NCBI RefSeq assembly: GCF_009834535.1
Contig: NC_045717.1
Span: 24,738,001 to 24,802,000, forward strand
Direction: 5' to 3'
DNA: 64,000 nt
From: Camelus ferus
Lineage: Eukaryota
Shown: positions 934 to 64,000 of the stretch, piece by piece
Position numbering within the stretch: position 1 is the stretch's first letter
Layout: the number at the start of each line of letters is the position of its first letter
The notes under the pieces: model-generated
Databases searched by the model: none
Seen by the model: the letters and a program-made list of their open reading frames with translations, nothing else
What the model was told of the DNA's origin: nothing
Made by a program: the position numbers and the translations under genes

Positions 934-3900
934 AATCTCACTTCAATGTAAAAATAAATTTGATGAAGCAAAAAAACCAAAACACAAATAACACCAATAC
1001 CCCCCCCAACAAAACCCACTACACTGGGCAGTCATGTGACTGGAAGACTGGAAGAGGTGGAGAAGTCTGATAAACACTGACGAGGCCGCGCTGGCAGGAG
1101 GGAAAGGCTCTGCGGAGAAGCCGGAACAGACCCCGGACCACGGCCACCGGCGCCGGTAGACGCGCGCACGCGCAGCAGGACCACGCCTGCCGCCCGACGC
1201 GACTCCAGATGGTTTTTATCAGCAGAAGACTGTTAATGACCTAGGTGCCCACCCGTGTGGTCTGGTCAACATCCACACGGGACCCCACACAAGGGAATAC
1301 TATGCTACCGTGAAAACAGGTGCTCCGATACAGACTCATCCCCAAGATGGTTTTAAGTGAAAAAGGCAGGTGCGGAGCAGGGGTTGCTATTTGTGTAATC
1401 AAAACCCAAAACCGAGGGAGGGGCTCTGTGCAAGAGCTGTCTCTGGGGGTGCGAGAGCTGGCCACATGTCAGCCTTGGAGTGGCCACGAGGTAAGGCGTC
1501 TGCCTTTTTCATACTGCAAACCCGTCAGAAGAGCGATGGCCCGACTGTCCCTGTAACGAGTAGGGGTGTAAATATTTTCGGCTTTGTAAGCCACGTGGCT
1601 TATGCCTCCACGTCCCCACTCTGCCCTGCACCACGCAAGCCGCCAGTGAGAGCTGAGCACAGGCCTGGCGTGGCCAAGACCAGCAGGGAACAGGCCCTGG
1701 TCAGCCCACCCCTACTTCCGAAGTCCAAAGCAGCACAATGGGGAAGCTATTTAAAAAGCAAACACAATTCAAATTTGAAACCAGCTCGGACTGGTTCGTA
1801 CCCCAGCTCTACCCAGCCCTGTACACCTCCATCCCCACCCAAGCCTGGACAGCCTCCACGCACAGGACCCATCTCTCAGGGCTAGGTCTGGAGATGGAGC
1901 CAGTCAGAGGTGGCCACTGACACTGCCACGTTGTTGCCGCCAGTTCCTGCTTGTTGAGGAGGGCTGGTCCCTCCAGAGTCCTGGCTGGGGCCCTGGAAAA
2001 GGGCCGCCTAATTGGAGGGCTGGGTGCAGGGAGGCTACTTGCAGACATGCCCAGACCTGCCCAAAGAGTTGGGGCAATTATTTATGGGGGAGGGGGTCTC
2101 ACATCTGATAGATCCCACCGAGTCCCCTGGAAGGCAGGGGAGGGGGGCGGTCCACCTGGTAATCAGGGAGCTCTGCCAGTAGAAACTGCAAGAAAGGTCA
2201 CTGAAGGACTAGAATCCGGGGTCCCTTTCCGAGAAGGACTCCTACTTCTAGGTGAGGCTGCTGTGGGGGCAGGGGATGCACACTGAATCCAGATTTTCTG
2301 CTGTGCCATCAGCTTGGGACGGCTGTGACTGTTTCCCCAGGGAGCCAAATGGCCAGTGGGAGGTGAGCTGCCACCTCAGCAGGGACACAGCACACCCTAC
2401 ACCACCAGGAGGGGGTGAGGGTCCCCCAAAACCGTGCCTTAGCCGTCCACCGCCAGTGGCGGCCCCACCCTTCGGGCTGTTCAGGGCTGAGATGTGGCGT
2501 CCATCCTCACCATCAGCTCCTGAGGCCAATCCTGCTCACTTCAAATCCCAAATGCATCCAGGGTGGTCCCTTCTCCGCCAGTGCTTATCTGATCAGAATG
2601 CAGACCCGATGCTGGTCTCCTGGCTCCCTCAGCTCAGGACCTTAGGGGGCACTCTGTCCCCAGCCCTGGTGGCCTTGATTCCACGGCAGCCACCTTAGCC
2701 ACCTCCTCATGCTCCTCACCTGCCAAGAACATCTCGCCTAGAAGCCTTTGCACTTGCCATCCCCTCTTCCAGAACGTTCCCCTCCTCAAGTACCTACACA
2801 GTCCTGGTGTTTAAGAAAGTCTACGCAAATGCCCCTGGAATAGAAGTCTTCCCTTGAGTGCCTTTATTTAAAAGCCACAACCTCCACCCCAACCCACCTG
2901 CAACTCCAGCGCTCCCCACCCCCTTCCCTGTTCTGTTTTCTCCAAAACTTTTATCTTCTTAGAGTGAACACAATTTTCCCATGTCTTTGGTTCGTTGTGG
3001 ACGCTGTGCCAAAGGTACCTCTGTTGTCACCCATGCTGCACAGGTGGAGCAGGGCGGAGGAGGTAATCGCCCTCCTAGCCTCCAGCACACTCACCAGGCA
3101 GAGCGCCCCTCAGGACTAAAGGGAGAGCCCCTGTTCCAGGGTGCTCAGGGGAGCTGGAATCCCGGGAGGAGCAAATGGACCAGGGAGACGGGGAACTAGC
3201 TGCCTGCTCGATCTGAGACCCCAACACAGAGCATGACATACGCATTACCACACAGCCTCGCAAACTGCCACTAGCAAATAATATTTAGTGACCTCAGAAG
3301 GTGCGCACGATATACCAGGGGGTAGGAGGTGACACACCAGTAGTCAGGACACACCACACTTCGTAGGTCGCACACACACAGAGAAGGCGGTGGCAAGAAC
3401 TAGCCGAGACCGCCCACAGGGACCGCCCCTGCCCTGGACAACGGGCTTCCTTGGTGTTAACCTGTGATTTCTATGATGAACACATATTTACAAAAATTTA
3501 AATAGGAAGAAAAAGACCTTTTAAGAATTCAATCGGATGGGACTGGTGTCTCTCCCACTGGCCTGAAGTCCTTTAGATGGCAGCCCCCTGGGGCCCCAGG
3601 CCTGGCGTCCAGGCTGAAGCCCCGCCCCAGCAGGTGGTGCTGGTCGGATGTGGGGGGTGTCATGGACAAGGCCAGAAAACAGGTGTCCTGGGCTGAGGAC
3701 AGAGGCCTCGAAAATGTCAGGGAGCAGACGGGTACCACAAACTCCAGTTGGGGGCTCTGGGTTCAAAACCACGCTCCTCCACTCACGGGGCAAGGGACCT
3801 GGGCTCCCGACTTCCTGCTGGTGGGGCCGTGGGAGGAACAAGCACTGAAAGAGAACGTGAGTTCAAAGTCGTTCTCACTGCAGCCCCCAGGTTGCTCCTC

Positions 3901-16874: not shown

Positions 16875-17384
16875 GGCTGCCTTTTCTTCTAGGGGACAAA
16901 ATGTTAAACAGGTACAAGGCCCCATCCCTTCTTTGCCAGACCCACCGCTTCCCAAGTTGATCTTTGTGATCGCTTTACCCTGTACCCTTTCTCCAGTATG
17001 ATAAGTATGTTATTTTTTGAAAAACCGAAAGAAAGAGAAGCTGAGAACATTTAAAAGGGCCAGTGTGGAAAATGGCTGGGTTGGCTGCCATTTGGAAAAA
17101 CCGAGGTCAATTAACCTTTGACCCACCAACTCCACTTCCCATAGAAATCACTGCAATGCTGCTGATGGTAATAATACCGGCTAATACTGTCAAACCCTGT
17201 TTTAAGCACTCAGATTGTGTCACCATTTCATCCCCACACCAACCCCGTGCAATAGGTACCATTATTGGGTCCAATTGACAGATGAGAACAGCGAGATCTT
17301 GAGTGGTTAAGTGACTTGCCCAAGTCACCTAGGAAAACAAGCACATTGAAATTGCATCTGAATATTCAGGGAAAAGCTGAAGTT

Positions 17385-17630
17385 GCAGCTCAAGTCTGAA
17401 GGCCGTCTCTTGGTGAAATTGCTTCTTGCTTGGGGAGATCAGATTTTTATTCTAGTCTGATTGGATGAGGCCCATCCATATTCGGGACGGGAATCTGCTT
17501 TACTTAACAGTCCATGGATTTAAAGATCAATCTTTCTCAAAAACACCATAGAAACATCCAAGTATTGTTTGACCAAGTATCTGGGCACCACTGTGACTCA
17601 GCCTAGTGGACACATAAAATTAACCAGCAC
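17385..17630. mobile_element. MLT2 (ERVL) LTR fragment
   Basis: CTGATTGGATGAGGCCCATCCA..GTTTGACCAAGTATCTGGGCAC..GACACATAAAATTAACCA. Confidence 0.65.
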
Positions 17631-25016: not shown

Positions 25017-33138
<8,122 letters not shown>

Positions 33139-33644
33139 GCGGGCTCCCTGCAGCCTGCCTCCTGGTGGGACTCAGCGCAGCCCCCGCGCCTGGGAACAGG
33201 TGACCACAGCAACAAGCCCCCACATTCTCCACGACACTTTGAGACTGTCCAGACCCAGTAATTCTCTGCCTGACCGGTTTCTGGGGCCTACTCCGTGCCA
33301 TCGCTCAACATGAACACTTGATGACGTTTTCTTTCGATATTTATTTCCAGATTTGAGGCAACAGAAATATCCTTACAGCAGGGACTTACCTGGCCTGTGG
33401 GGATGGGGAGATGGGACACCCAACACTTGATTTTGTTTCTTCAGAGGGAAACTCAAATGTCCATAAAAAAATTAAAACAAATTGCATTAAGAGGTTTATT
33501 TGGGTAAATGGTCCGTAGTGGATTTTCCTCTAGAAGGGGGAAGGAACAAGCGGGTAGACGTTCTCTTTGGACAGAAACTAGAAGGCAGGAAATCCTGTGC
33601 AGTGTCACCATGAGCACCTCCAGCTGTACTAGTGCCATTGGAAT

Positions 33645-33650
33645 AATAAA
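33645..33650 (+). terminator. EEF2 polyadenylation signal
   Basis: AATAAA ~500 nt after the stop, followed by a GT-rich (TG)n downstream element at ~33669-33682. Confidence 0.88.
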
Positions 33651-35419
33651 TTTGATACGGTGGTGATCGTGTGTGTGTGTGTCCACGTGTTCCTTCACCA
33701 TCCACTCAGGCTGCCCCTGCCAGTGCATGGTGGTTGGTGCTATCCCAGTACAGTGTTCAGTATCATTTCAACGTGTCAGAAGGTCACACCAGCGGGTCCA
33801 AGACACGTGATCCAGGCCGGTCCAGTAGTCCATCTGTCACCCAGGGCCAGCCAATGGCACTTCTGTGATGGTGGAACTGTCCTGCATCTGTGCTGTTCTG
33901 AGGGGCAGCCACTGGCTCCATGTGTCTACTGAGCAGTTGAAACTGGAGCAGCCCCAGAACCAGATTTTTGACCTTTAGTTTTAACTACATTTCCATAGCC
34001 TGACGGGGCTGGTGCTGTTAGTGCAGGCTTATAAAATTGCTTTTTGTCTTACCCCATCAAAACTTGTAACTAGTGAAGCACGCTAGGGGCTCACTTGTAA
34101 AAGTTCCTAGGATGTGGTAAAGACCCCTTACCTAAATTCTGTGCTCGTACCAGCTCCTTGAGCAGCAGCAGTGAAGATTCCTTTGTCAGATTCTCTGGGT
34201 TTGTCAAAGAGTTTAACTCGGATTTGTTATATACGGGTTGTCCTCAGGCAGATGGGGAGAGTGAAGTACTGGTGGGTTATTGGCCAGGAGGTTGGCCAGG
34301 CTGCCCAGGCCTAAGCTTCACTAATGTGTCCATGAGGTTTCAGCTTTATTGCTGAATCTAAGTGTGGAAGGAGGAGAAAAAAGTAACGATATCAGACATT
34401 TTTGGCGCTAGATGACCAAGGTCAACATCAGTGATGAATCATGATAATGTAGACCCTTGATGTGATGAGAATGCCGCTCTGTGGCTTTCATAAAACCCAT
34501 CATCCCAGTCTAACCATGAGAAAAACAGGCAAATCCCAATTCAGGGGACTTACATAAAATACCTGACCAATCCTCAAAGCTCATTAAAAATCGGAAACCG
34601 AGAAGCTGTCCCAGCCCGGAGGAACCTAAGGAGGCATAACTAAATGTGACATGGGAAGATAAAGGACATTAGGGAAAAACAAGGGAGTCTATTCTGAATA
34701 AAGTATGGACTTTGGTTAACGTTTCACTGTTGGTTCATTAGTGGTGGCAAATGTACCAGACTAATGTAAGATGTAATGATAGGGAGAACTGGATATGGGA
34801 GAAGGCACTGCTGTAGCTGTGAACTGAAGTTCAGTAAGGGTGCAGGAAGGCGATCTCCAGGCAGGAGGAACAGCTTGTGCCAAAACATAACGGCGGAAAT
34901 GAGACGTTTGAGGTGGGAAGGAAGACAAATCGTGTTGGAGTGAAGAAGAGGGAGACTTGCCAAAGTCAGGGCGGTTAGCAAAGACAAAGAGACACAGGGT
35001 CTGTGTCAGACGGCATCTAAGGTAGTTCTGCATAGAAAGAATCTCAGCTATGCCTTTAAGGGCTATGTGACTTTGGCTGGATCTGTTCCCCCAACTGTAG
35101 AGTGGGTAAAGATATTACTGTATTTTACCTTCTCAGGTTGATTGGTACGCATTTAAGGTTCATTCAGCAGTAGCTGCTATCATTTATCTTAGGTCGAAAA
35201 GGAGTCACGAAACAATCCTCAAGAGTTAACGGCAACACCTGACTGACCTGATTCGCGTTTTTACGTATTTGGAAGTTGGGTAACATTTTACAGAGGAGGA
35301 AACTGCCACTCAAGGGCTTAAACAGCCCCAGGATCCACCCCAGGAGCTGTCATACCGGTTCTGGTCCTTGGATTCGCGTATCATGCCCAAGAAAGGCAGG
35401 AAGAGCGACGCAGGACTTC

Positions 35420-35830
35420 AGCATCCCGCCTCCCGACTTCAGAGCCGCGTCGGAGAACGGGCGGGGCGGACCAGGGGCCGGAAGTCGGAAGGTCAACTTC
35501 CGTAAGCTTGACCGGCGTTCAGTACAGCCAATCAGCTGCGGGAAGGCGAGGCTTTTCCAGAGACAGCATTCTGCTGAGGAGGGTGGGACGCCCGCGGGCC
35601 AGGGCTTGGAAAGTGGTGGAGGGCGGGGCTTCATGAGCGGCGGGCGCACTGACCACTGGGCCGTGGGATCTGCCTCTGGGGGGCGGGAGCTGGCGGGCGC
35701 GGTGACGTCGCACGGGTCGGCACTTCGAGGCAGCCGAAGCGGCGGCGCCCGAGGACGCGGCGGCGGCCAGCGCGGCTGAGGGGCCGGTCCGTGGTGCGGG
35801 GCCGAGGAGGGTGCGGAATGGGCTCGGTCT
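35420..35830 (+). promoter_or_regulatory. DAPK3 CpG-island promoter and probable non-coding exon 1 (~35720-35786; donor uncertain)
   Basis: GC box 35462-35468, ETS/GABP cluster CCGGAAGT 35478-35485, CGGAAGG and ACTTCCG 35496-35502, CCAAT 35528-35532, TGACGTC 35703-35709. Exon 2 starts at a splice acceptor (36827), so an upstream exon is required. Confidence 0.8.
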
Positions 35831-48964: not shown

Positions 48965-48970
48965 AATAAA
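48965..48970 (+). terminator. Probable DAPK3 polyadenylation signal
   Basis: First AATAAA I found downstream of the stop codon, followed by a GT/T-rich tract. Confidence 0.7.
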
Positions 48971-50812: not shown

Positions 50813-52754
50813 ACTGATGAAGGTGCACTGCGCCTGCTCCCAGGTTTACTGAGCAATCCGACTCTCAAGTCGCCCCTTTAGGCACCCCATCCCTCAGCCC
50901 TTTTCTTTCAGGGGTATGATTGGGGGTGCATGTTAGCACCTTCTCAGGTCTGCAGAGTGAGGGCTCCCTGCATCTGGTTTTGCCTTGTGCAAAATAAGGA
51001 TGTTTTCTTGTCTGCTGCTGAAGATGTGTTGGAATGAACTGTGGGAGCCTTGACCCTGTCCCTCCAGCTGGTGGGAGGCTGGTGGGAGTCAGGCCGTACC
51101 TGGCCCAAGACTGGCTCGGGGTTTGGCTGCAGTGTATGTGAAACTCTGCAAGGAAAGGGTTGAAAGCCTGTATTTCTCTCAGTGAAGCTCGCGCAGGAGA
51201 AGGCAGGTGAGGGAGGCTGGGGTTCCAGGGCCAGCTCTGCGCCGAACTTGCAGATTCCCCCTCCTTGCTGGCTGCATGGAGGTAGTGATTCCTTCCTTCG
51301 CCGGAGATGCTACGAGGAGTAAGTGGGAACTTGCAGAGCACTGTGTAAACATAACGGTGCAGCTTACATCCCAGGGTTGACCTGAGACCAGCAAAGCTGG
51401 TGTTTCGAGGCAGGTCAAGTTCTCTAAATGGACACTGTGACACCAGCTTCAGAGTGAGACAAGGGTGGGCACAGGGGTCACGAGCGATGCCTCTAGAGCC
51501 ACACGGCCCCACACCCCCGCCACAGGGAAGGGAGAGGGTCTGGGAGGGCTCAGATTTGGGGCAGCTGACAGAGTCCAAGCTTTATTTGATTGAAGTCACG
51601 AGGGTCAGAAAAGGTCACCATCATCATCCTTTAGGTTCCGGCTGATCTTGTGGTTGAGCACTCAAAGGGAGGTGCTTCAGGCTAATCTGTACCATGACTG
51701 CCAGAGCTGGGAGCCCTTACAGCTGATCTATTATCTTTGCTATTGTCACTTCTCTTGCCTGGTAAGTCATTCCTCCCTGCATTCTTTTGTTCCCTTAATT
51801 ACTGAGGCCTGTTCAAGGACAAACATTGTGGCCAGGCTTAGATTCCAAACTGGCTTAGGTCAAAAATGGCTTCCCTGATGTCAAGAAAGCCATGCCTGGT
51901 TCTGTTTCTCCAGGACCCATGCCTTGTGTGCTTTCACTGGCTCCCTTGGGCGGGGATACGGCACTGGTGTGATCGGCTCTGGGCTGAGCCGTCTCACTGC
52001 CCCCGGTGGAATCTGGCCCGTTGGTTCCACCTTTAGGAGGAACCTGGCAACAGGCCCTGCAGGAAAGCTCCCCAGTGGGCAGAAAGCCTCCTGGCTTTGC
52101 CAGTGACCAGCAGAGAAGAGTCAGAAGGGGCAGGACCCGGGGTGAGGCAGGGGAGGAGTGGGGGGTCTCATGGCCCACTCAGGGGAGACAGTTTCAAGGA
52201 TACCCCATGTCAGGGATTGGCACAAGGGCAGCCAGTGACATTCCCGGCTCATTGCCTTGCATGACTTCCTGCTCTTCTGTTGGGTGGGGAGCTGAGGCAG
52301 CGTAGGGCGGCAGCAAGATGCCCTGGAGAAGCAGGGCCTCATTGGTGGGGGCCTCAGTGGGGGTCACTGAGCGGCCCTCCCGGATTTGGCAGATGGAAGA
52401 TGGAGCCAGAATATAGGCCTTGTACCACATTGTGCATTCGTCACACACCATCTGCAAAATGAGTCAGATGGTCCTGGGTTTGACGCAGCCTGATTGGTTC
52501 TTGGTAGACAAGGTACAGCTTTGTCCTCCTTAGGGACAGTGGTTCCTGGGGTGGCAGCAAGGGTTGGAGGACAGGCTGTGTCGGGATCCGGCACACACCG
52601 GGCACCCCTCACTAGGCATGAGTCTTGTTAGATTTGGGGGCTTAGGCACCGGAGTCACCCGGCCACGCTGGGTCCTGCACCTGCCTCTCGTAGGTCAGAG
52701 GGCCGCCCTCGGGCCACAGCTGCTGTGCTCCTGACCATACTTGGGCAAGAGGCA

Positions 52755-52901
52755 GCGGCCGCTATTAATAACCGGTGAGGCCCACCAGGCGCAGGGTGGC
52801 GGGTGGCTCCTATAAAGCCAGCCCCACCAGCCCCAAGAGGCTCCTTCAGCCCCCGAGACCTTTAGCCCCCCTGTTGTACAGAGAGAAAAAGAAAAGTAAG
52901 T
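52755..52901 (+). promoter_or_regulatory. Muscle-type regulatory module (MEF2 + TATA + splice donor); candidate promoter of an unannotated transcript
   Basis: CTATTAATAA 52762-52771 fits YTAWWWWTAR; TATAAA 52811-52816; AA|GTAAGT 52896-52901. Confidence 0.55.
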
Positions 52902-54428
52902 ACCGAAACCATCCCCTGGTCCCTCCGCCCGGCCCCACTCGGTGGCCTGAAAGTGAGACACAGAACAGTGGTGAAAGACATGCCCCCTTGCAAAGGACGC
53001 GTGGAACACAGCCGCGGGGGCCCTTAACTGGCCCAGGAGGGAAGAGGGCTGGCGGGGGGGAGAAGGAGGGGGCTGGGCCTTTTCTTCCTCAATTTTCTTT
53101 GTCCTAGAGGGGACAGATCTGGGGACCATGCCCCGGCCAGGCGACCCCAGGATGCATGTGTGTCTTGCAGTGACGTGGCCGTGGTGCTGGCTCCCCTCAG
53201 GGAGTTCACGGCTTCCTCTCTACCCCACCCCTGTCCCCAGACCCCACCCTGTGTCCCCCATGCTACCCCCGGGGTTCTTTATTTTTGAAGGTCCCTATAT
53301 GGAAGGACTTACGGACCAGTCCAGAAATGAACCCTGTTTGCATGATTGTACCCCAAGACGCCTCCACTCTGGGAGCTTTCCGACCCCACCTGCCACCCCC
53401 TCCCTCCCTGACTGGTTGAATGCCAGAGAAGCTTAAAGGGAACCGGGAGGCCCGGGGCTCCCTTCACAGTGTGCTGAGTAGATTTGGGGGGCTCCTGGGT
53501 GGCAGCCGAGGGCATGTGGCTGGTCCTGTCTGTCTCAGTCCTGCTCCTCCCCCAGGCACTGGCTGGCCCCCGCAAGTCTGCCCCAAGAATGTCCCCTCAG
53601 GGACTTGGCAGGCAGGGCGCCTGAGATGGGGGTGGCGCTCAGAGGTGACAGCTTCGGGCTCTGGGTGAGGGTGAGGGCACCGGCAGAGTAACTGCTGATT
53701 AAGAGGGCTGGCTGAGTGCTACTTGATGTGAGTGGCAAGTGCTTGGGGTGGGGGGGTCCTGAAATAGAGTGAGAAAAGGGGGCAGGGAGATGGGGCTGCA
53801 GCCTCACCCCCGCCTCCCAGGGCCTCTGCCTCCATCTGTCTCCTTCCATGGCTGTTAGGACATTTGGGGAAGGGCCTCAGGGCTCAGCTCCGGTAGTATG
53901 AGCGTCCAGGGGCTGGGGGCTCCTATGGGGATGCTTTGCATGGAAGGTTGCCTGTCTGTGTGTCAGCAGTGGGCTGGGGTGTGCAGGTTCTCCCCAGCAG
54001 GGCAGAGGCTTCAGATTGGCCTCCTTATTGGGGTGACCTCAGAGGAGCCAGGTTGCAGCGAGAGGCCCACGGGATCTTGCCCAGCCCCCTTAGCCCCCAT
54101 TGACCCTCCTCAGGCAGCCCTCCACACGTCCTCCCTGGGAGGCGGGGGCCACTCCTCCTCCCCCACAGCCTGGGCTCCCTGCACCCAGGGCCCTACAGGG
54201 ATCAAGGAAGGGGGCAGCAGGAAGGCCTGGCCGAGTTCCTCGTGGTGGGGGATGACTTGGCCCAGGCGGGTGTCAGCCACGGGACGACTGGCACGTGGGC
54301 GTATGTGTCACATGTGTGTGTGTGTCAGGATCTGTCCCGTTCTGGGCTCTCAGCCTTCTCCACACAGCGAGTCCCACTCAGGGCACCTCCAGGGGACCAG
54401 GGTTTGAGCCAATTCTCTGCCCTTAGTC

Positions 54429-55827: not shown

Positions 55828-56084
55828 TTGCTACTGTTCTCGTAAAGACTGAGGAGTCTGGTGGCCAGGCAGGGCTCTGGCTGCCCCGGAGTCACCTCTC
55901 CCATGTCCCTGTCCCATCCTGGACTAAATCAGGCCTGGTGACGGGCAGACCAGCCTCACAGTGCTGCGTGCTTGTGGCAAAGGGCAGGCCTTGGCAGGCC
56001 CGCCTGCGCTCCCTCCTGGCCCGGCACCAGTTCCCACGCGGCCTCCAGGACACAGCGACCTCTCCCCAGGGCCCTCCGGCCCAG

Positions 56085-58195: not shown

Positions 58196-58349
58196 AAAAA
58201 ATTTTAAATTAATTAAGTAATTTTGTTTTGGGGAGGAGGAATGTACTTAGGTTTATTTATTTACTTTTTAGAGGAGGTACTGGGGATTGAACCCAGGACC
58301 TCGTGCATGTTAGGCATGTGCTCTACCACTTTGAGCTATACCCTCCCCC
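58196..58349 (-). mobile_element. Vic-1-type SINE inserted in an old L1 fragment
   Basis: Full consensus; perfect 15-bp TSD TAAATTTAATCATTT at 58181-58195 and 58350-58364. Confidence 0.9.
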
Positions 58350-59842: not shown

Positions 59843-62800
59843 CTAGGAGCGGTTCAGGAGCCAGTTCTGAATGTCTTCCAGGACTTGGTGGAAGAGCTCC
59901 TCGCGGGACTTCATGCCGTCCAGGTACACTGAAATCAGAAAGGCCACAATCAGGGCCCCTCGGGACTTTGCCGAGGGCCGGGTCACTGGGGTTGCTGCCA
60001 GGAGGCAGGTGGCTGGCTCACAGAGGACTGGTGGACTGCTGGGTCAGGAGGAAGCTGACCTACGGAGTCAGGCTGCTGGAACAGAATTGGCCTCTGGGGC
60101 CCAAGGCAAGAGAGACTAGTAGTGAGACTCGAGGAGGGACTTCCAGGTTTCCCAGACGGTCTCAGCGGGGAAGGGCTGGCCTCATCCTACTCAGGGACTT
60201 ACCTACTTCCACGCCACTGGCTTCCATCTCCCGCTTATACTTCTGGTACATAGGCCACACATGGCCATCGAAGAGGCCAGGGGGGTCGGGGACTGGGTAG
60301 CTTCGAATACTGGGGAAGGAGATGGATGAGAGTGAGTGATACCCATGTCACCCAAGGGTGGTGCCATGAGCAGAACCTCGGGTGTGAGAACTGGGTCAGG
60401 GGCAGCACCACAGGGGACGAGGACCCCACTGAGTCAGGGGCTCTGCGATGGGGCCTGGGTGCCCCAACTTCCAGCATCTTCACTGGCAGGTCTGGGAGAT
60501 GTCTGGGGCAGCTCCTGAGTGGGCCACTCTATCCAAGCCCCAGGCTGCGGGCTTCTGGAACACAGCACTGGCCACCCAGGAGCCTGCTGCCTTCAGGGTG
60601 GCCCTGTGTCCACAGGCATTACCTGGTTTCCTGGTCCCACCTGGGAATGCAGACAGGGCCTCCAGAATTACCTTCTCCTCCACTTGCATTCTTCATACGG
60701 GACAGTCAGGAAGTACCGTCGGCTATACAAGTCCACCAGGGGCCTGGGCCGTGGGGGGACATGGTCAGTGCCCATGGTCAAAGCACACCCCCCAGGGCCC
60801 TGGCCTCTGGGGGCTTTCCTGGCTGGTGAGGGCTGGGGGTTCTGACCTGATTAGTTAGGGGTGAGCGAGGGGACCAGCATCAGCCAGTCTTCTACTGCGC
60901 CCAGGAGCATCCTTGCAGCAGCCTCCCTCCCCGAGGACAGAGTCCTCCCTCTCCCCCGATTTGGATGGGCACTGAGAGGTATGTTGTCTTGCCTGGGGTC
61001 ACACAGAAAGGCTGGGGATCCCACCCAGCCTCCAGCTCTGCCTGAGGAAGCTGAGTTTCCCCAAGAAGTATGCATGTTTGCCCCGGACCCTTGAGCTGAG
61101 CCCAGCACTGCCCGCAGCACTGAGCCTCCCGCTGCACCTCCCACACACCCAGGCCTTGGTGTCCCATCCGTTGAAATAAAAACTCGGTGGCCTGGGAGGG
61201 CCTCGATTGCCTGGGGCCTGAACCCACAGAGGCTCACTTGTAGCTGTAGAGCAGGAAGCCTTCCAGAATGAGGATGTGTGTGTCCGAGGCGTCCAGCTGG
61301 ACACTGACCCCGTGGGCGCGGGCAAACTTCCGGGGACTGCTCACCCAGGCCTGCACGGTGCTCAGCATGGCCTCCATGTCCAGGGACTCCAGCACTGGGG
61401 GTGGGAGAGTGGGCGTTGGTGGGGCAGGGGGCCAGGAGACAGTGTGGGCAGGGGGCGGGGGGCTGCCGTCCATCCTTACCGTCCCACTGTTTGAAGCCGT
61501 CCTCCCCAACTGCTATTTGGTCTTGGGGCTGAAACAGAGGAGCCCAAGCCGCGGGCTCAGTGCCCGCCTTCCCACCTTACCCCACCATGGGGTGACAGCA
61601 CTTGGAGAGGCCACAGTGGGGGTCCGGGAGCACCTGCCTGTCCCGTCCCCCTGTAGCTGATGCTTAAAGGCTCAGAGGTCCCGGGCACTCAGACTGGCAC
61701 TCAGAGCCCCTCCCCAGCCTCGTAACTCTTGGGACCAGGAGTGGGGCAACTGTGCGTCCATCATCTCCTTACCCCTCACCCTCCACAAAACATCAAGGGT
61801 ATACTCAGCCCATTTTGCAGATGGGAAAGTGGAGGTGCAGAGGATAAAGGGTACTGCTCAGGTGGCACGCCCCCTCTGGGAACTGCAGTTTCCTCATTGG
61901 TCCCATGGGGGACGGGTGTGCTGAGAGAATGTGCCAGGTGCACAGTAGGTGCTCAGTAATCGAGAATGCCCGTCCCTTGCTCTCCCAGCGTGGGTTAGCC
62001 CAGGGTGACCCTGGAGAGGTCTGCTTGCCCTGAGGCTCCTTCTCAGGGGCTGCCTCCCCCAACCCCCGGCCGGGGCGGCCACCTTGAAGAAGTCATCCTG
62101 GTGGATCACGCAGCAGTTGGGCAGTGACTTAAGGAGGCTGTTGGTCAGTGTGGTCTTGCCGCCGTTGGTCACGCTGTGGAGAGAGCACACACGTGAGGCT
62201 ACCTGGGTCCCCTCTCCGGGCCTGCGCAGATCTGAGGCCCCCCCAGATCTGAGGCCCCCCCCCCACCCCAGGATCAGACTCAAATTGAAAACACGGGCCT
62301 GTAAAACCATAGAGCTAAGGGAGTATGTTTATTCACCCACGGTCAGAGAGGGCTTTCTAAGCAGTCAGCCCGGGCTGCCCGGGCCAGGCACAGGCCTGTG
62401 CGTGCCTGCCTGACGAAACAGAGAAAAGGGGCAGAGGGTATGAAAACAAACAAAAAAGCTAACACGCGGTTTTAGCTGGGGTCATGGAAGCACTGCTTTC
62501 TGTGTTCAGACTCCTTTAGCGTTACTGTAAACCCAGGAGGCGGGGCGCAGAGCTTTCCAGATGAGGAAACTGAGGCCTAAGTGTAACTTAGCCTCAGGAG
62601 GGCTTAAAAAAACCCAAAACATTAAAGCAAGTGCAAGCTGGGGGAGAAAAAATATTTGTGACAGGAAAACCAGCAGTTCACTGCAAAACTGGGAAGAGGC
62701 AATCACCCTACGACAAAGATTTTAAAAAAGCAATTGGCAAAGCAGGATGACCGGTTCATCCTGGTTTGCCCGGGATGTCTCTGGTTTTAGTGCTGAAAGT

Positions 62801-63835
62801 TCCAAGTCCTGGGGACACTTCAGTCCCAGGAAAAGTAGAATGACGGTCACCCCCAAGAGCTCTGGACTAGGGCTGATGAAGGACAGAGAAGGGTAGCTGT
62901 CAGGCCTTTCTGGAAATGCGTGTCCCTTTGACCTGTGTGTCCCGGATCTAGGAATCGGGTGGGAATCTGGGCGTGGAAGTGGGGAAGCTGCAGCCGATGG
63001 GAAAGGCGACCCCCGTAGATTATGGGGAGCAGGTTAGAACACGCCTGATGTTCATTTGGGTTCTTGCTGAAAGGCACACCTTGCCCTCAGGGCTGGCTAC
63101 AGAACGCCTCGCCCCGCAGGAAGAAATGGGTGCCCTTGGTCTCACTCTTACCAGGAATTTCAGGAGAGTGATGGAGCGTTAAACCGACGGGGAAGGACCC
63201 GGCCGCCCCAGGCAGGGAGCCCCACGCCAGCCTTGCTTATGCTTCATGTTTCTCAGGCATCATCTTAAAAGGCCTGGTTATTAGCAGTAAAACGGAGAGT
63301 TTGAAACCTGGGAAAGGCAAGGCCCCTCCCTGAGGGTCAGCAGCCGTGGCTTAAAAAGCAGGTGCCACAATCAGGGGAGCGCCATTCTGGGCTCCCCGCC
63401 CCACCTGCCCACGTGCCTCCCTGGGGCCCATGTCTCCCCACCCCCACCCCCACGGATGGCCCAGCACCTTAAGGAGGGTCTGCCTGAGCTTTATAAAGTC
63501 TTCTATCCCCCACAGAGTTCAGTGTGTGTTAGGGAAAAGCAACTTCCGTTTGGAATTTAAAATTGGGCCCCGTGCCCAGCCTGCGCATACCGCTGCGGGC
63601 CCAGAGCCCCCGAGGGCAGAGAGAAATCCCGCCCTCGCCCTCCGACCTTGGGCGGCCGACCCCTGCGACCCCATCCCCGGGCAGCCCTCCGCGCTTCCCC
63701 GGCGGCCGGCCCGCGCCTCCCCCGCCCGCCCGCACGCACGCACGCACGCACGCACAGGGGCGCGCCTCCGCCCCAGCAGAGCAGCCCGCCGGGGACGCTG
63801 GGCGCTCACCCTCCGATGCCCACGATGTACTTCAT
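59843..63835 (-). CDS. NMRK2: Nicotinamide riboside kinase 2 (MIBP/ITGB1BP3), 195 aa. Coding exons 63835-63810, 62173-62083, 61528-61480, 61394-61238, 60743-60672, 60309-60203, 59928-59843
   Basis: [18 protein letters not shown]-loop, [38 protein letters not shown]. All GT-AG; lengths sum to 588 nt; TAG at 59845-59843. Confidence 0.98.
62744..62853 (-). mobile_element. MER81-like MITE in NMRK2 intron
   Basis: GGATGACC..CCTGGTTTGCCCGGGA..GGTTTTAGTGCTGAAAGT..GGTCACCCC. Confidence 0.65.
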
Positions 63836-64000
63836 CTCCGCGCGGAGGGGCGGTGGGGACCGCGCTCGGCAGGCCGACTCCCGACTCCCCGGCACCCCGA
63901 AGCGCGCTCCCGAACGCCTCCCGGCGGCGGCGGCGGCTTCATTGAGAAAACCCTGCGCCTTTATAGGCCGGCGCGGTCCGAAGGACTATGGGGAGCGCGG
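63690..64000 (-). promoter_or_regulatory. NMRK2 CpG island and proximal promoter with TATA/CArG at 63958-63967
   Basis: CpG-dense. Minus strand reads CCTATAAAGG ~125 nt upstream of the ATG. A further upstream non-coding exon outside the window cannot be excluded. Confidence 0.7.
63721..63755 (+). repeat. (GCCC)n(GCAC)5 tetranucleotide repeat in the first NMRK2 coding intron
   Basis: cccgcccgcccgcacgcacgcacgcacgcac. Confidence 0.9.

Follow-up and report, generated by a model that had tools for sequence, protein, structure and literature searches.

Background

Classic striated-muscle promoters, such as those of muscle creatine kinase, myoglobin and desmin, combine a MEF2 site with a TATA box (and an E-box). 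They serve structural or metabolic protein genes, whereas the module described here is proposed to drive a non-coding antisense transcript.

The closest described counterpart of such a transcript is the mouse heart and skeletal-muscle lincRNA Atcayos (2310050B05Rik), whose transcription spans Nmrk2 and precedes Nmrk2 expression in cardiac differentiation (10.1101/793257). After E9.5 it is strongly expressed in the ventricles and in somitic mesenchyme, and its level in the adult heart is very high; the RNA is nuclear-enriched and polyadenylated and carries no coding signal (10.1101/793257). Deletion of 2–3 kb around the Atcayos transcription start site (TSS) abolished Atcayos and lowered Nmrk2 (10.1101/793257). 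Atcayos is also induced during C2C12 differentiation, where it correlates with Mef2c, MyoD and MyoG, and it is needed for timely differentiation of satellite cells, which is delayed by its knock-down (PMC7507427). NR_015477/2310050B05Rik is among the listed neighbours of Dapk3 and Nmrk2 (PMC5438630). Further cis-acting lncRNA promoters beside cardiac genes are those of the Handlr/Hand2 and Rubie/Bmp4 pairs (10.1101/793257). As with Atcayos, these are tissue-specific lincRNAs for which TSS deletion alters the neighbouring gene; however, Handlr and Rubie lie beside their targets, while Atcayos runs antisense across its own.

The present analysis concerns a 64,000-nt stretch of Camelus ferus DNA (NC_045717.1), referred to below as the window, in which a cluster of muscle-promoter and splice motifs was found between DAPK3 and NMRK2. 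With a probability of roughly 0.8, this module can be read as the promoter of the Camelus ferus orthologue of Atcayos, together with its first exon and its first splice donor. A first-pass annotation had put forward the cluster as part of a candidate unannotated gene. The feature is real but not new in kind, since it looks like the start of the counterpart of the published mouse gene Atcayos, and the mouse transcript that the annotation had placed between Dapk3 and Nmrk2, 2310050B05Rik, is Atcayos (10.1101/793257; PMC5438630). What had been an anonymous motif cluster is thereby tied to a published gene.

Genomic context and sequence features

Six-frame motif scans and ORF lists placed three genes in the window, EEF2 (+), DAPK3 (+) and NMRK2 (−), with the following features:

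About 27–32 kb, plus strand: EEF2 exons, from motif scans and ORF lists
To 47325, plus strand: frame of the last DAPK3 coding exon, with the stop codon next and AATAAA at 48965, from ORF lists and motif scans
63.8 kb down to 59846, minus strand: NMRK2 coding exons, the gene occupying 59.6–63.9 kb
63808–63835, minus strand: first NMRK2 coding exon (MKYIVGIGG), about 130 bp downstream of CCTATAAAGG
63958–63967, minus strand: NMRK2 promoter CCTATAAAGG, with a TATA within a CArG box

DAPK3 and NMRK2 face each other with their 3′ ends across a gap of about 10.9 kb (10,860 bp), and the map positions of these two genes therefore place the module within it, on the DAPK3 strand (+) and about 3.8 kb beyond the DAPK3 polyA signal. 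The window ends (at 64000) just beyond the NMRK2 promoter, which leaves the ATCAY 3′ region outside it. The features of the module and its immediate downstream sequence are:

52678–52683, plus strand: upstream E-box, CACCTG
52717–52722, plus strand: E-box CAGCTG (MyoD/myogenin-type), about 120 bp upstream of the predicted start
52732–52749, plus strand: nearly invariant 18-mer TGACCATACTTGGGCAAG, with CArG-like core CCATACTTGG
52762–52771, plus strand: MEF2 consensus site CTATTAATAA, a perfect YTA(A/T)4TAR, assigned by consensus match only
52810–52817, plus strand: TATA box CTATAAAG, invariant in seven species
52835–52895, plus strand: predicted ATG-free first exon, with a start about 25–32 bp downstream of the TATA box
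52839–52862, plus strand: exon 1 core GGCTCCTTCAGCCCCCGAGACCTT
52892–52903, plus strand: 5′ splice site AAAA/GTAAGTAC, with the G of GT at 52896
52950–52959, plus strand: second donor-like site AAA/GTGAGAC, a possible alternative donor, with the donor G at about 52953
53080–53107, plus strand: proposed acceptor, a pyrimidine tract with AG at 53106–53107
53145–53167, plus strand: conserved box CCCCAGGATGCATGTGTGTCTTG, CCCCAG(G/A)ATGCATGTGTGTCTTG, about 40 bp past the proposed acceptor

Reading of the sequence and a script both recovered the MEF2 site, TATAAA, ATG-free exon, GTAAGT donor and acceptor exactly where the first-pass annotation had placed them. The TATAAA at 52811–52816, contained in CTATAAAGCCA at 52810–52820, is the only one in the window with a MEF2 site 15–70 bp before it, and an exact-coordinate script found no ATG between 52811 and 52895. 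The module has a GC content of 0.63 and a CpG observed/expected ratio of 0.24–0.33, and it is therefore not a CpG island, though GC-rich. It is also single-copy, with one nhmmer profile match in the window and one at each orthologous locus that carries it. In having a YTA(A/T)4TAR site tens of bp before a TATA box, both under constraint, together with a nearby E-box and a non-CpG-island context, the module resembles the classic muscle promoters. A similarity was also observed between the TATA of the Atcayos-like module (CCTATAAAGC) and the NMRK2 promoter CCTATAAAGG.

Occurrence of the motifs in the window and in shuffled sequence

Taken singly, the motifs are frequent in the window, with 9 MEF2-consensus sites, 28 TATAAA and 19 GTAAGT over both strands. 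The ordered MEF2..TATAAA pair, in contrast, occurred once in the 64 kb, at the module, as did the ordered triple MEF2..TATAAA..GTRAGT. In dinucleotide shuffles of the whole window the pair was recovered in 2 of 300 and the triple in none of the 300, and neither pair nor triple appeared in any of 1000 shuffles of the gap alone. The analysis confirmed that the motif cluster is far beyond chance.

Conservation among placental mammals

For comparison with other mammals, a search with an NMRK2 exon led to mammalian NMRK2 proteins and from these to genomic loci with 10 kb flanks, namely those of Mus pahari (L001), rat (L002), serow (Capricornis, L003), pangolin (L004), manatee (L005), opossum (L006), anteater (L007), bushbaby (L008) and flying fox (L009); the locus of the mangabey Cercocebus atys (L010) was fetched from the DAPK3 side, with 10 kb downstream. 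The flanks covered the gap in six species (serow, pangolin, flying fox, manatee, Mus pahari and rat), representing three placental superorders. When the 10,860 bp gap was compared by BLAST, only two blocks of about 54 bp each, 52810–52862 and 55873–55926, aligned in all six, and the former is the TATA/exon 1 core.

An alignment of positions 52700–52925 of the window with the six loci was then inspected column by column. Exactly four invariant runs of at least 6 columns were present among the seven species, coinciding with the MEF2 site (52762–52770), the TATA box (52810–52817), the exon core (52842–52848) and the donor (52892–52903), the last being the longest at 12 nt. Of the motif positions named in the first-pass annotation, 21 of 22 were invariant, against 60 of the 204 others (Fisher p = 1e-9). 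The 18-mer at 52732–52749 was identical in 14 of its 18 columns, whereas the CAGCTG E-box was present in the window, serow, pangolin and manatee and absent in flying fox and rodents. At the second donor-like site, serow, pangolin and flying fox have GTGAG and manatee has GTGAC; it was not found in rodents.

The ordered MEF2..TATAAA..GTAAGT pattern was found once in each of the six loci, on the matching strand and at the syntenic position. The MEF2-to-TATA spacing varied among species from 24 to about 40 bp, and the donor lay 60–85 bp after the TATA box. About 20–30 nt of the 3′ part of exon 1 are missing in rodents, so that a TATA-directed start would there give an exon 1 of about 30 nt. Against the genomic DNA of Mus pahari and rat, the module gave a BLAST identity of 85% over 53 bp and nhmmer E values of 1e-44 to 1e-46. 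The expectation that the motifs would be conserved in other mammals thus held for the MEF2 site, TATA box and donor, which are invariant in the seven species, but only partly for the acceptor at 53107. These results support a real promoter and first exon, deeply conserved over a span of placental evolution of about 90–100 My.

Downstream of NMRK2, the module profile matched nothing in the 10 kb flanks of opossum, anteater and bushbaby, of which the latter two end short at window-equivalents of about 53660 and 55200, respectively. It likewise gave no match in the 10 kb downstream of DAPK3 in the mangabey, a flank dense with Alu-like repeats; in primates, judging from this Cercocebus atys flank, the module may be lost or displaced by more than 10 kb from DAPK3. 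Alu-like repeats run throughout positions 26800–35800 of the mangabey locus, which has almost nothing in common with the window gap. Two scans of metagenome contigs for the pattern of the module, intended to catch stray mammalian copies, found none.

Correspondence with mouse Atcayos

The siRNA targets and qPCR primers for Atcayos that are given in the PMC7507427 supplement were mapped to the Mus pahari locus with at most 4 mismatches. Three of the six siRNA targets matched the minus strand of L001 at 3130–3688 and the reverse qPCR primer matched the plus strand at 1574–1593, all four lying within the Atcay 3′ region. The forward primer and the other three siRNA targets had no match in L001 within 4 mismatches, and these oligonucleotides may be junction-spanning, diverged or outside the locus. 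From the strand of the siRNA targets it follows that the Atcayos RNA is encoded on the strand of the module, which in Mus pahari lies at 17320–17503 of the same minus strand (17320–17410 for the block homologous to 52810–52903), and that its 3′ exons are in the Atcay 3′ region. Since Atcayos transcription spans Nmrk2 (10.1101/793257), its start must fall in the gap between Nmrk2 and Dapk3.

Mus pahari and rat keep the gene order Atcay, Nmrk2, Dapk3, in agreement with the DAPK3/NMRK2 arrangement of the window, and no block of the gap other than the module is both conserved and promoter-like. It occupies the same slot as Atcayos between the Dapk3 and Nmrk2 3′ ends, on the strand opposite to both Nmrk2 and Atcay. 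Strand, synteny and its standing as the sole conserved promoter-like block make the module the probable counterpart of the annotated mouse Atcayos TSS. The earlier proposal of a spliced, MEF2/TATA-driven non-coding gene on the plus strand, with its start between DAPK3 and NMRK2, convergent with NMRK2 and perhaps regulating it, is supported by motif conservation, by the Atcayos papers and by the strand of the oligonucleotides. Further likenesses are that the window module can be aligned with Mus pahari and rat, that the mouse RNA is non-coding, and that expression of Atcayos in heart and skeletal muscle and its correlation with Mef2c fit a MEF2/TATA promoter. The two differ in that the mouse 3′ exons map to the Atcay 3′ region, beyond the window, in that exon 1 is about 20–30 nt longer in the window, and in that the candidate acceptor at 53107 has no rodent counterpart.

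Downstream splice sites and conserved blocks

The first-pass annotation had further proposed a 212-nt intron closing at 53107. The strong acceptor sequence is indeed present in the window, and an AG is found at or beside the acceptor column in pangolin, manatee and flying fox, but serow has no AG there and rodents have lost the pyrimidine tract by deletion, for which reason the intron and its exon 2 are treated here as hypothetical. Other acceptor-like sites, at 53858, 54367 and 54547, have an AG at least as conserved as that at 53107, and the second donor-like site (52953) is conserved to at least the same degree as this acceptor. A crude global alignment of five species gave several equally plausible acceptors and no single exon 2.

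The box at 53145–53167 was mostly conserved in a six-species alignment including rodents and in a further alignment, and contains the RBFOX-type motif TGCATG as well as a CATGTG E-box. Its flank carries AGAATGC (MCAT-like) in most species, though not in the window. The second block of the gap, extending over 55873–55999 and aligned in all six mammals, carries the NFI-like half-sites GTGCCTGTGGCAAAGGGCAGG and TTGGCAG. Its candidacy as exon 2 was rejected because conserved splice sites are missing, and the block is probably a regulatory element rather than an exon.

Proposed mechanism and alternative explanations

The motifs, their uniqueness, conservation, synteny and strand were established in the present analysis, and mouse expression, the nuclear non-coding nature of the RNA and the effect on Nmrk2 are taken from the papers cited above. 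Together they suggest, as probably as the orthology itself, that MEF2 drives initiation in striated muscle, that the transcript is spliced from the invariant donor, and that transcription proceeds antisense over NMRK2 and affects it in cis. MEF2 factors are predicted to bind CTATTAATAA, MyoD-type factors on the upstream E-box would help in some lineages, and some factor on the nearly invariant 18-mer would assist. In heart and skeletal muscle, RNA polymerase II would be recruited to the TATA box, with a predicted start near 52835–52845 (+) and a short exon, free of ATG, whose last base is 52895. U1 would be recruited by the invariant GTAAGT donor, and the exon would be joined to a downstream acceptor, of which 53107 is one candidate. 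The polymerase would continue antisense through NMRK2 (59.6–63.9 kb, −) toward the ATCAY 3′ region, and if the mouse promoter deletion is a guide, the element, its transcription, or both would support NMRK2 expression in cis. The start site, the acceptor used and the activity of the module in Camelus ferus are thus predictions, drawn from sequence and from the mouse.

The main rival to this account, considered unlikely, is that the module functions solely as a conserved muscle enhancer of NMRK2 (or DAPK3), giving no stable spliced RNA in Camelus ferus, with the TATA-like and donor-like sequences kept as protein-binding sites. The poor conservation of the acceptor at 53107 and the presence of a second conserved, non-exon-like block at 55873–55999 are in line with such a role, and the effect of an enhancer cannot be separated from that of the RNA or its transcription in the mouse, because the deletion removed 2–3 kb of DNA (10.1101/793257). 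However, an invariant, 12-nt perfect 5′ splice site located 60–85 bp past an invariant TATA would be difficult to account for if the DNA were not transcribed and the RNA spliced, and a mouse Atcayos RNA does exist, on the same strand. Far less probable is a chance constellation of short intergenic motifs, or an alternative 3′ exon or read-through product of DAPK3. Every motif is common on its own, as counted above, and DAPK3 lies 3.8 kb upstream on the same strand, but the MEF2/TATAAA/donor triple is unique in the window and absent from all 1,300 shuffles, and the motif positions are the invariant positions among the placental mammals compared. An internal DAPK3 exon is further contradicted by exon 1 itself, which is not preceded by a pyrimidine-rich acceptor.

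Just as improbable is a micropeptide or small-protein gene, which the first-pass annotation had offered as an alternative to a lncRNA, in which translation would use either the ORF at 53128–53436 (102 aa) or a smaller one that opens with the conserved ATG at 53152. The longer ORF starts 20 nt into the proposed exon 2 and the ATG at 53152 falls within the conserved box, yet a search of 5.8 billion proteins found no homologue of the 102-aa ORF, and its first ATG (53128) is missing in serow, pangolin and manatee. From the ATG at 53152, the frames of the window and Mus pahari diverge completely past the shared codons MHVCL. Neither start codon nor frame is thus kept at the protein level among species, and mouse Atcayos is nuclear-enriched and lacks a PhyloCSF coding signal (10.1101/793257), leaving this alternative unsupported.

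Within the preferred reading of the module as the Atcayos start, a more tentative possibility, itself doubtful, is that selection has for about 100 My kept only the start module, with its MEF2 site and TATA box, some 25 nt of exon and a perfect U1 site, leaving the RNA body and exon 2 free. The function would then reside in MEF2-triggered, splicing-licensed antisense transcription over NMRK2 or in the promoter acting as an enhancer, and not in an RNA product; if so, the module may be lost or displaced in Old World primates.

The new point made here is a modest one, namely that conservation in Atcayos is confined to a compact module of MEF2 site, TATA box, exon 1 and donor. Its base-level conservation across Laurasiatheria, Afrotheria and rodents, without conserved downstream exons, was not set out in the mouse Atcayos papers cited above. 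The MEF2 site, 18-mer and donor offer small, separately mutable targets for studying Atcayos control of NMRK2, a stress-induced enzyme of NAD+ salvage in heart and muscle, and the module allows a testable distinction between the effect of an enhancer and that of transcription. For genome annotation, it illustrates that the first exon of a lncRNA can be placed through conservation alone.

Other observations at the locus

A 72-aa gene model deposited for pangolin (L004, 19671–23951, −) lies on the module strand and overlaps the module. It was set aside as uninformative and apparently spurious, its last ORF being low-complexity (GPLPPSVVVAAA). In the window, the NMRK2 frame at 59846–60043 (−) stops immediately after ...LLNRS, which would make the C-terminus shorter than in the human protein. 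An Rfam scan of 48–64 kb gave no match except a tRNA-like SINE. This intergenic tRNA match (50 bits; 58272–58345, −) most probably represents the head of a tRNA-derived SINE, since its sequence has several matches within the rat locus.
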